Shown here: piece by piece, positions 51,401-52,700 of the stretch
Position numbering within the stretch: the first letter of the stretch is position 1
Layout: every line of letters starts with the position of its first letter
From: Orbicella franksi
Lineage: Eukaryota
Assembly: GCA_964199315.1 (NCBI GenBank)
Contig: OZ116699.1
Coordinates: 19,902,001 to 19,966,000, forward strand
Direction: 5' to 3'
Length of the DNA stretch: 64,000 nucleotides
Program-made: the position numbers and the translations under genes
Notes under the pieces: model-generated
Seen by the model: the letters and a program-made list of their open reading frames with translations, nothing else
Database searches by the model: none
Told to the model about the DNA's origin: nothing

Positions 51401-52700
51401 ATACCAGACCCGTTCACGGTACTGCAGAAGACGACTGAGCCCATTTCATCTCGGAAACTGTACAGGCATTAAGGGACCAATTCAAGTGGAGAGTAACATC
51501 TGTGAGGTGCAGCCTTGTGCAGAATGGAGTAGTTGGTCAACATGGCAAACTTGCAGCCAGACATGTGGTAGTGGCATACAGAGGAGAGTAAGAAAATGCA
51601 AAGGCTCGATAATTGATATGGATTGTCAAGGAGAAAATTCACAAGCTGTCAGTTGCAACACAGAACCTTGTCCTACAATCCACCCAATAACTTATCCCCC
51701 TCGAATTACTCTAAGACCACCAGATCCATGTCCTGATCCTGAAAAACCACAAAATGGCTATTACAAGAAAATTGAACAGTACGGTTCTTACTATGTTACC
51801 CATTATTGCAGAAGACATTATTATGTTCATGGACCAAGACTGCGGCACTGTGAAAGTGATGGCACATGGTCTGATGAAGTGCCTTACTGCCTCCCTATAT
51901 GCGGAGAGTCTAGTTCAAGTTTTGACAATGTACAATATCAGCGGTTAAGAATATTTGGTGGTGGTACATCTCTTCCTGGTCTGTGGCCATGGCAAGTGGC
52001 ATTGACAGTTAATGACCTTTTTCACTGTGGTGGGTCCCTTATTGCAGAAAGTTGGGTGGTGACAGCTGCTCATTGTGTTTACAACAGACACACAAGGAAG
52101 CTTTTCTCTCATATTAGAGTCAATCTTGGAGTTCATGACGTTAAATCTGGACTAAGAGAACCTTATGTTCAAAGTATTGACAGTATTGAGATAGTGCCTC
52201 ACCCAAACTTTGACTGGAACACTTTTGACTCAGACTTAGCATTGATAAAACTTAAATGGAAGGCCAACATAACTGACCATGTACGCCCAGTGTGTTTGCC
52301 AAGCAAACAGCAGAGACGTAAAGTAACTACTGGTGCTATGGGAGTTATGTTAGGGTGGGGACTCACTGAGGGAGAAAAGCCAAAAACAGAATTACAACAA
52401 GTTTATATGCCAGTTGTGGGACACTCAAACTGCCAAAAAGCTTACAAGAAAGAGACTTGGCCTGTAACATCAAACATGCTCTGTGCAGGATATGCTAGTA
52501 ATATTAAGGACTCCTGTAAGCGGGATAGTGGGGGAGGGTTTCTATTCCATGATTCAAAGGGCAAAAGGAAGAAGTGGTTTCTTGGAGGGATTATTAGTTG
52601 GGGAAATCCTCAATGTGGGACACCTGGAAAATACAGTGTGTTTACTCATATAAATAGTAGATTTTCAAGGTGGATAAAAAATCATGTACATTACAGCTGA
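48483..52700 (+). CDS. Secreted mosaic serine protease, single exon, 1405 aa: signal peptide, LRRNT, 8 LRR, LRRCT, 13 TSP1, Pro-rich linker, CCP/Sushi, trypsin-like domain
   Basis: Uninterrupted 4.2-kb ORF. The first ATG (48483) is followed by a hydrophobic signal. LRRNT CPTECQC, LxxLxLxxN repeats, LRRCT NPFYCDCKLRWL, 13 WxxWxxWxxCSxxC units, CCP CPDP...YC...C...GTWS...PYC, linker LPICG, activation site RLR-IFGG, triad TAAHC / DSDLALIKL / DSGG. No TM segment. Confidence 0.95.
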   Translation: MFSSVVWSLLFLSSTSWVVMSQGEGQEMNTCPTECQCTTMNKVYMYCGFAGGLKHLMIFPSFIPIKAEILSLRMNLLTEIPESALRNLTCLTTLNLRSNKLRDLPATVFRDLTSLKSFNAGFNKLSSLPGRLFQGLNALQELYLDNNAIERIPEELFQDLPSLKRLHLHHNKLKTFSGNAFRGTFSLQGLSLANNQLTAIHEGTFANLTSLRRLTLTDNRIMTLSENSLRELGALTILRLESNNISSIPERAFAGLKTGIVAHLRRNPFYCDCKLRWLKGWLKSKTKYIHSIASRTTCFQPDHLKGKPILYVADEQFTCVDGQWTEWSPWNACSRTCGRGTQVSTRRCTNPPPGRGGEKCEGNHIKTKSCNGPHCGASWTAWSEWSECSKTCSSGIEVRTRSCQHSLTGLSSDSCIGSPQERRICTREPCSIDGVWSSWSKWSSCSVTCSWGTRLRTRICDNPPPRYGGKPCFGRGITTEICYLGSCPVHGGWSTWSSWSSCSASCSAGTTTRYRNCSKPVPRYGGDLCDGDSIQREHCQSGSCPIHGGWASWSIWSMCSVTCSRGSQLRLRICNNPLPQHGGQNCPGNFSDLRHCDLGPCPIHGNWTAWSQWSDCSKTCANGTRSRNRTCSNPVPQFGGRNYPGEVTEIKSCIKAPCPIPGKWATWSQWSKCSKSCSSGRKSRRRTCDNPSPSNGGPPCTGRATETEMCQLIPCPIDGGWGEWSNWTDCSKTCSEGIQSRYRNCNNPPSQHGGKQCSGNSNQSKHCSQQPCFIHGEWTKWSNWTDCSKTCDVGQQKRTRLCLNSNLKSVAQASDILSCAGNETDMRVCFQGPCSNQGKWTEWSSWSQCSVSCGLGKQERFKNCSRNGDLSTEFCLGPLMQVKSCYQNCTVSGGWSEWSNWTACSSSCGNGVQAKFRLCTNPKPQAGGDSCSGKNVMFKSCVIAKCRDESHQNYSFWTPWTSWSHCSATCARGYQTRSRYCRRRLSPFHLGNCTGIKGPIQVESNICEVQPCAEWSSWSTWQTCSQTCGSGIQRRVRKCKGSIIDMDCQGENSQAVSCNTEPCPTIHPITYPPRITLRPPDPCPDPEKPQNGYYKKIEQYGSYYVTHYCRRHYYVHGPRLRHCESDGTWSDEVPYCLPICGESSSSFDNVQYQRLRIFGGGTSLPGLWPWQVALTVNDLFHCGGSLIAESWVVTAAHCVYNRHTRKLFSHIRVNLGVHDVKSGLREPYVQSIDSIEIVPHPNFDWNTFDSDLALIKLKWKANITDHVRPVCLPSKQQRRKVTTGAMGVMLGWGLTEGEKPKTELQQVYMPVVGHSNCQKAYKKETWPVTSNMLCAGYASNIKDSCKRDSGGGFLFHDSKGKRKKWFLGGIISWGNPQCGTPGKYSVFTHINSRFSRWIKNHVHYS

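Follow-up and report, generated by a model that had tools for sequence, protein, structure and literature searches.

Few residues of the largest protease family are as conserved as Gly193, and natural exceptions such as mesotrypsin and TSV-PA are informative on the recognition of inhibitors and of primed-side substrates. Human mesotrypsin (PRSS3) is a free digestive enzyme that combines Arg193 with the catalytic triad, Asp189, Asp194 and trypsin specificity, and its activity depends on further residues besides Arg193. The same combination is predicted for an S1 protease encoded in a 64,000-nucleotide stretch of the coral Orbicella franksi (GenBank assembly GCA_964199315.1, contig OZ116699.1, positions 19,902,001 to 19,966,000, forward strand), hereafter the window, to whose own numbering coordinates refer unless a contig or locus is named. 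In this case, the protease is the C-terminal domain of a 1405-residue mosaic of LRR, TSP1 and CCP modules. An earlier note on the window had read its active-site motif, KDSCKRDSGG, as a mesotrypsin-type Gly193Arg replacement. Our comparisons across its relatives indicate that Arg193 is a genuine, selectively maintained and old trait of the hexacorals sampled, namely stony corals and sea anemones.

Residues 193 and 195 contribute the backbone NH groups that make up the oxyanion hole (PMC3014083), and proteases with a residue other than Gly at 193 offer a precedent for altered interactions with both inhibitors and substrates (PMC3123349, PMC3014083). Mesotrypsin, with its Arg193, is a fully active trypsin (PMC12227052). 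A bulky residue at this position, such as Phe193 of TSV-PA, may make the enzyme less sensitive to BPTI and less prone to interact with substrates (PMC3123349), while factor XIa mutated at residue 193 is less active and binds inhibitors less well, and KLK10, which has Ser193, is a slow enzyme (PMC3014083). As in the window protease, Gly193 is replaced and the triad is kept in TSV-PA, the viper venom proteases (Val, Thr or Ala193) and KLK10, but the replacing residues are of a class other than Arg, Gln or Lys, and these enzymes belong to another phylum and have another architecture. They also amount to a few paralogues, whereas the state described here is kept across a whole animal subclass. Non-Gly193 S1 proteases are a known class, to which the hexacoral family adds an unusually ancient and well-replicated case. 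With respect to domain architecture, the cnidarian Ap_Trypsin-like is a ShK-TSR-trypsin protein with two ShK domains and four TSRs (Neubauer et al. 2017, PMC5446238). Like the window protein it is secreted and carries TSP1 repeats with a C-terminal trypsin domain; it is without LRR or CCP and is reported absent from Nematostella (PMC5446238), whereas the LRR-TSR-CCP family of the window protein has a Nematostella member. Searches of the literature for the LRR-TSR-CCP-trypsin family, or for position 193 of cnidarian proteases, gave no specific report.

Direct translation places KDSCKRDSGG at 52506-52535 on the + strand, within an uninterrupted open reading frame (ORF) of 4.3 kb; of the span given earlier, 52507-52535, the end was right and the start was one base late. 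The N-terminus of the coding sequence (CDS) is signal-peptide-like (MFSSVVWSLLFLSSTSWVVMSQ), and Pfam recovers LRR_8 (5.5e-66), TSP_1 (3.8e-139, in 13 stretches) and Trypsin (3.3e-54) along its length. A separate scan of the linker, translated from 51699-51950, matched Sushi at its residues 11-64. Chymotrypsin numbering was taken from a HMMER alignment to MASP-2 and from an alignment of 27 sequences (A1). The features are as follows:

48483..52700, + strand: complete CDS, 1405 aa plus stop, one exon (4218 nt), first in-frame ATG at 48483
48483..52700, + strand: CDS architecture, a signal peptide, LRR block, 13 TSP1 repeats, one CCP/Sushi and the S1 protease domain
51729..51890, + strand: CCP/Sushi (Pfam Sushi, E 4.8e-07, 30.5 bits against a cut-off of 20.7), directly preceding the protease
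51948..51953, + strand: zymogen activation site Arg15/Ile16 (QRLR/IFGGG) by translation, RLR/I[FYV]GG in all hexacoral orthologues
51951..52697, + strand: S1 (chymotrypsin-fold) protease domain, 249 aa, MASP-like by sequence and model
52071..52073, + strand: His57 (CAT), in TAAHC, invariant column H41 of A1
52233..52235, + strand: Asp102 (GAC), in DSDLALIKL, invariant column D95 of A1
52509..52511, + strand: Asp189 (GAC), base of the S1 pocket with Arg/Lys specificity, invariant column D187 of A1
52518..52520, + strand: Lys192 (AAG), by translation and alignment numbering
52521..52523, + strand: Arg193 (CGG), the residue in question, by translation and alignment numbering
52524..52526, + strand: Asp194 (GAT), by translation and alignment numbering
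52527..52529, + strand: Ser195 (AGT, an AGY-type codon), the nucleophile, invariant column S193 of A1

The Gly193Arg replacement through CGG at 52521-52523 is exact by translation, and the triad and Asp189 are intact as had been stated: His57, Asp102, Ser195, Asp189, Asp194 and the residue 16-Gly-Gly N-terminus are invariant across the 27 aligned domains. The domain accordingly shows the triad, the activation site with Asp194 and the fold expected of an S1 protease, and departs from it in Gly193, a residue that is near-invariant in the class without strictly defining it. The disulfides Cys42-58, 168-182 and 191-220 are present in addition to an unpaired Cys122. Residues 39-42 are Leu-Phe-His-Cys as counted from Cys42; position 39 is among the accessory positions specific to mesotrypsin.

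Since GGG to CGG needs a single base change, the Arg codon might have been an artefact of assembly or, as the earlier note had allowed, a sequencing error or an allele private to the individual sequenced. To examine the codon, contigs of four public runs were aligned over 47800-53400, three of which cover 52521-23. A polyA RNA run (X3, organism label A, study P3) gave one 1671-nt contig over 51550-53220, a DNA run (X16, organism label B, study P8) one contig over 51663-52785, and a further RNA run (X18, study P9) one over 51246-53359; none of these Logan contigs lists a difference at 52521-23, so that CGG stands unchanged in DNA and transcripts alike. Both X16 and X18 do list neighbouring single-nucleotide polymorphisms, at 52212 and 52767, by which they count as independent genotypes. 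Contigs lose rare variants, and a minor Gln allele in the X3, X16 and X18 samples is compatible with these data. Given CGG in three independent studies, two organism labels included, and Arg, Gln or Lys in every orthologue, with 73 of 73 relatives lacking Gly, an error or private allele has a negligible probability and was rejected.

An indexed word search with the C-terminal 306 residues as query recovered 23 proteins of the same architecture (P0001-P0021, P0026, P0033). Among them are proteins annotated as 'SCO-spondin-like' from both Montipora foliosa (71% identity) and Nematostella vectensis (56%), and cluster members extend the family to Oculina patagonica, Desmophyllum pertusum and Acropora. 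The orthologues share the architecture at lengths of 1401-1459 aa, and a single uninterrupted ORF is present at all 9 orthologue loci examined. The window gene belongs with them by the order LRR-TSP1-CCP-S1, a single-exon CDS, the DSGGG motif and reciprocal high similarity. Position 193 is Arg, Gln or Lys in all 73 full-length hexacoral members and Gly in none (0/73), while the non-family matches of the same search in which the motif was found all read GDSGG. The question whether Arg193 is fixed among orthologues has a divided answer: the residue is never Gly, but Arg itself is not fixed. Of the 11 closest paralogous loci fetched from the coral's own genome (33-41% identity), 10 yielded the motif, which reads GDSGGP in every case.

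More distant members came from searching 1.84 billion representatives exhaustively without a profile, and from a second indexed search. A clade of the LRR-TSP1-CCP-protease family that contains Hydra vulgaris has four TSP1 repeats and retains Gly193 (CKGDSGGG) in 13/13 members examined, whereas a third clade has Lys, Asn, Gly or Arg at this position. Proteins of the third clade (P0229 at L013:2001-5441; P0328, P0330, P0331, P0334 and P0204) are without the R/I.GG activation site, and four of these six (P0229, P0328, P0330 and P0331) read DG[IL]CK[KN]DSGGG, with Gly at the expected Asp189; to judge from these motifs, they may be non-canonical or differently activated proteases. Beyond the family, the 144 best representatives at 50% identity contain 254 xDSGG motifs, with Gly in 233, Arg in 7 and other residues in 14, of which Asn, Ala and Tyr account for 4 each; a replaced Gly193 is therefore rare among animal S1 domains but recurs. 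A CxRDSGGP motif was also seen in single domains of other animal multi-protease proteins (P0146, P0163, P0171 and P0189), indicating that Arg193 arose repeatedly outside mesotrypsin and the hexacoral family.

In a midpoint-rooted maximum-likelihood tree of 43 CCP-protease regions, the hexacoral sequences form a clade (support 99/97) with Arg in 15, Gln in 5 and Lys in 1, and the medusozoan or Hydra-type sequences form another (100/99) in which all have Gly; the deep branch that unites the clades has weak support (79/65). The MASP-like sequences, which are the nearest outgroup, likewise all have Gly. By parsimony this pattern suggests that Gly was ancestral and that Arg was acquired at the base of the hexacoral clade. 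At least three later changes from Arg to Gln can be recognized, namely in P0012, in the clade uniting Montipora P0011 with the Acropora-cluster P0013/P0014, and in P0001, together with one change from Arg to Lys in P0019. The Acropora/Montipora clade and two other lineages are fixed for Gln193.

The DNA of nine relatives (loci L013-L021) shows how the codon has evolved. Arg193 is encoded by CGG in the window, P0008 and P0020, by CGA in P0018 and P0021 and by CGT in P0010, indicating that the third base turned over while the amino acid was kept. Gln193 is encoded by CAG in P0001 and P0090 and by CAA in P0014, which are the CpG-transition products of CGG and CGA respectively. Ser195 is AGT in all 10 lineages for which DNA was read. 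Pairwise Nei-Gojobori ratios of nonsynonymous to synonymous substitution (dN/dS) of 0.08-0.18 indicate strong purifying selection on the protease domain. In a close relative about 93% identical to the window in DNA, two proteins from different sequencing runs, P0090 (Gln, CAG; L021:301-4518) and P0094 (Arg), differ at 4 of 1405 residues (99.7% identical). Such near-identity implies that Arg and Gln alleles coexist in one species or between nearly identical populations, and suggests a standing R193Q polymorphism at a CpG. On the whole, the substitutions seen indicate that the constraint at 193 is for a long polar side chain other than Gly, rather than for Arg as such.

The activation sites also differ between the clades. 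In members with Arg or Gln193 the P1'-P2' residues are Ile-Phe (66), Ile-Tyr (2) or Ile-Val (2), and in the Gly193 Hydra-type clade mostly Ile, Val or Leu followed by Leu, Ile or Phe. If the enzyme is autoactivating, this could represent co-variation of the S2' wall with its own cleavage site, although it is not independent evidence because only two clades are involved.

The affinities of the domain lie away from the digestive trypsins. Its best sequence match in the PDB is the catalytic domain of MASP-2 (E 1.1e-48, 37% identity), followed by enteropeptidase, MASP-3, prostasin, factor IX and MASP-1. An AlphaFold2 model of the protease domain built on A1, with a mean predicted local distance difference test (pLDDT) of 89.7 and a predicted template modelling score (pTM) of 0.89, has the two-β-barrel chymotrypsin fold, for which at least 500 PDB matches were obtained at E <0.001, with top template modelling (TM) scores of 0.89-0.91. 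The best fold matches are MASP-2 and MASP-1 (TM 0.89), then thrombin and enteropeptidase, and sequence and fold taken together favor MASP-2, enteropeptidase, MASP-1/3, prostasin, thrombin and factors IX/XI. Neither the 60 best sequence matches listed nor the 50 best fold matches listed include a mesotrypsin entry. By these similarities the domain is MASP-2/MASP-1-like and not a digestive trypsin, which bears out the suggestion of the earlier note that the likeness to mesotrypsin is convergent.

That likeness is, by the sequence comparisons, confined to one residue. Arg193, an intact triad and Asp189 are shared, and the side chain at 193 is expected at the S1'/S2' rim in both enzymes, but there is no kinship beyond the S1 superfamily and the window protease stands outside the pancreatic/brain trypsin lineage. 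Position 192 is Gln in mesotrypsin and Lys here, and Arg193 of the window family, unlike that of mesotrypsin, is interchangeable with Gln and Lys, so that Arg is neither specifically required nor conserved. The resemblance to MASP-1, MASP-2, C1r and C1s extends to a CCP placed directly before the S1 domain, and cnidarian MASP-like proteins share the RLR/I.GG activation site. An AGY codon for Ser195 and a protease domain in a single exon characterize the MASP-2/C1r/C1s gene type, and the window protease has both; like MASP-1, it also has the histidine-loop disulfide Cys42-Cys58 (52026-52076), and it mixes in this way two classical gene types of complement proteases. Pfam finds LRR, 13 TSP1, one Sushi and Trypsin but neither CUB nor EGF in the protein, whereas CUB, EGF and Sushi are present in true cnidarian or deuterostome MASP-like proteins (P0228, P0240). 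The CUB-EGF-CUB-CCP-CCP-SP architecture of MASP/C1r/C1s is absent: LRR and 13 TSP1 repeats stand in place of CUB-EGF-CUB, and there is only one CCP. In addition, MASPs keep Gly193. Because LRR and TSP1 repeats replace CUB-EGF-CUB, and with the histidine-loop disulfide kept, the window protein is not a MASP, though its CCP-SP module recalls the MASP/C1r/C1s group.

The gene is transcribed and spliced, as seen from one polyA RNA contig of X3 that joins 47823 to 48397 (shorter side 24 nt) across an intron in the 5' untranslated region (UTR):

47824..48396, + strand: 5'UTR intron, ~573 nt, GT..AG, with the cut possibly 2 nt further right

The mRNA has a spliced 5'UTR followed by a single-exon CDS, and because of this intron the gene is not strictly intronless. 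Upstream of the start codon, at 48460, is an out-of-frame ATG. A short dispersed repeat (53005-53054) follows the stop codon at a distance of ~300 nt; contig depth on this repeat is 60-420 as against ~6 in the flanks, and many contigs of other loci end there. Five raw RNA reads of run X24 were placed, all on this repeat at ~53005-53054 and none on the gene.

Cnidaria are known as a phylum for Kunitz-type inhibitors, and the earlier remark that cnidarians make many of them is borne out in this genome, where Kunitz/BPTI domains have at least 60 matches, many of them arrayed in tandem:

C6:28.88-29.05 Mb; C10:22.29-22.97 Mb; C3:24.83-24.90 Mb; C14:5.40 Mb: Kunitz/BPTI domain matches

Some arrays on C6 recur at ~27-kb spacing. 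No Kunitz gene was found in the window, and the nearest match on the same contig is ~3.5 Mb off. The abundance of Kunitz domains alone does not explain the residue, because the own-genome paralogues in which the motif was found, like the Hydra-type members, keep Gly193.

Given the above, a scenario can be proposed in which a cnidarian family with ancestral Gly193 acquired Arg in the hexacoral lineage and from then on held a long polar residue at 193 (Arg, Gln or Lys), with no change elsewhere in the catalytic apparatus. Residue 193 would still contribute its backbone NH to the oxyanion hole, and the enzyme is predicted to be active after cleavage at RLR/IFGG because its catalytic and activation residues are invariant. 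The side chain of residue 193 would project over the S1'/S2' subsites, and this overhang would narrow the primed-side sequences accepted, giving a regulatory protease of restricted specificity; canonical Kunitz/Kazal-type inhibitors would also bind it more weakly, as a side effect or an advantage, much as with mesotrypsin Arg193 and TSV-PA Phe193. By analogy with these enzymes, we give an even chance to the proposal that Arg, Gln or Lys193 overhangs S1'/S2', restricts primed-side specificity and weakens canonical inhibitor binding in an enzyme that stays active. Several observations count against it. Arg is replaceable by the uncharged Gln (in at least three independent changes and in the allele pair), which implies that the charge is not essential; CGN codons are CpG-hypermutable, and some Gln lineages may reflect mutation pressure on a tolerant site. 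A residue other than Gly at 193 is recurrent, in ~8% of the xDSGG motifs among the best representatives, and need not always mean inhibitor resistance. The Hydra-type relatives, of a phylum that is Kunitz-rich by the literature, nevertheless keep Gly193. A more far-reaching version, by which a MASP-like recognition protease was converted in the hexacoral ancestor into a primed-side 'gated' enzyme, insensitive to Kunitz/Kazal inhibitors and narrow in its substrates, with Arg/Gln variation tuning immune or matrix proteolysis, is considered rather unlikely.

A somewhat unlikely alternative is a zymogen-like, cofactor-dependent enzyme, in which the side chain at 193 would destabilize the oxyanion hole and leave the protease poorly active until a substrate, or a ligand of the LRR/TSP1 arm, induces the active conformation, as in factor VIIa, factor D or KLK10. 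The loss of activity in factor XIa substituted at 193 and the slowness of KLK10 with Ser193 (PMC3014083) fit this account, as does the very large putative recognition arm of LRR and 13 TSP1 repeats, which would suit ligand-controlled proteolysis, and pLDDT is somewhat lower (76-88) over residues 181-230, around the active-site loops. However, mesotrypsin with Arg193 is fully active (PMC12227052), and the activation site, Asp194 and Ile16-Gly-Gly are invariant here as in conventionally activated proteases. Near-neutrality, in which side chains are simply tolerated at position 193, drift fixed Arg in the ancestor of the hexacorals and Arg, Gln and Lys now interchange freely, is unlikely; it draws on the coexisting alleles of P0090 and P0094, on the at least three changes from Arg to Gln by CpG transition and on the ~8% of related S1 domains without Gly193. 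Against it, Gly (GGG), Ala, Ser, Trp, Leu and Pro count as one step from CGG and yet only Arg, Gln and Lys occur in the 73 sequences, which span the anemone-coral split, and Arg was kept despite synonymous codon turnover in a domain under strong purifying selection.

A dedicated inhibitor-degrading enzyme in the strict mesotrypsin sense, with the main role of cleaving and inactivating Kunitz/Kazal inhibitors made by the coral itself or by symbionts, prey or pathogens, is improbable. Arg193 with an intact triad and Asp189, the at least 60 Kunitz domains of the genome and the mesotrypsin precedent (PMC12227052) speak for it. On the other hand, a MASP-like domain on a 1150-residue LRR/TSP1/CCP arm does not resemble a free digestive trypsin, the window contains no Kunitz gene linked to the protease, and the further residues that mesotrypsin needs beyond Arg193 would be required as well. 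The acceptance of Gln and Lys in place of Arg, together with the coexistence of Arg and Gln alleles, makes a strictly Arg-dependent mesotrypsin mechanism unlikely.

If the reading of a primed-side gated enzyme is true, the hexacoral family would have arrived at the mesotrypsin principle independently and far earlier, in a protease of the innate-immunity type, and the inhibitors escaped would be those of the Kunitz and Kazal types in cnidarian tissues and venoms, perhaps also those of symbionts or pathogens. If residue 193 has no measurable effect, its state would be a mere curiosity of sequence conservation. The non-Gly193 state is nonetheless found throughout the hexacorals sampled, in a protease joined to recognition domains of the LRR and thrombospondin types, and the natural Arg, Gln and Lys versions together with the Hydra-type Gly versions form an evolutionary series on which the trade-offs of residue 193 between catalytic efficiency, specificity and inhibitor escape may be addressed. 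The family, mis-annotated as 'SCO-spondin-like', is a candidate for a role in cnidarian extracellular recognition or proteolysis.

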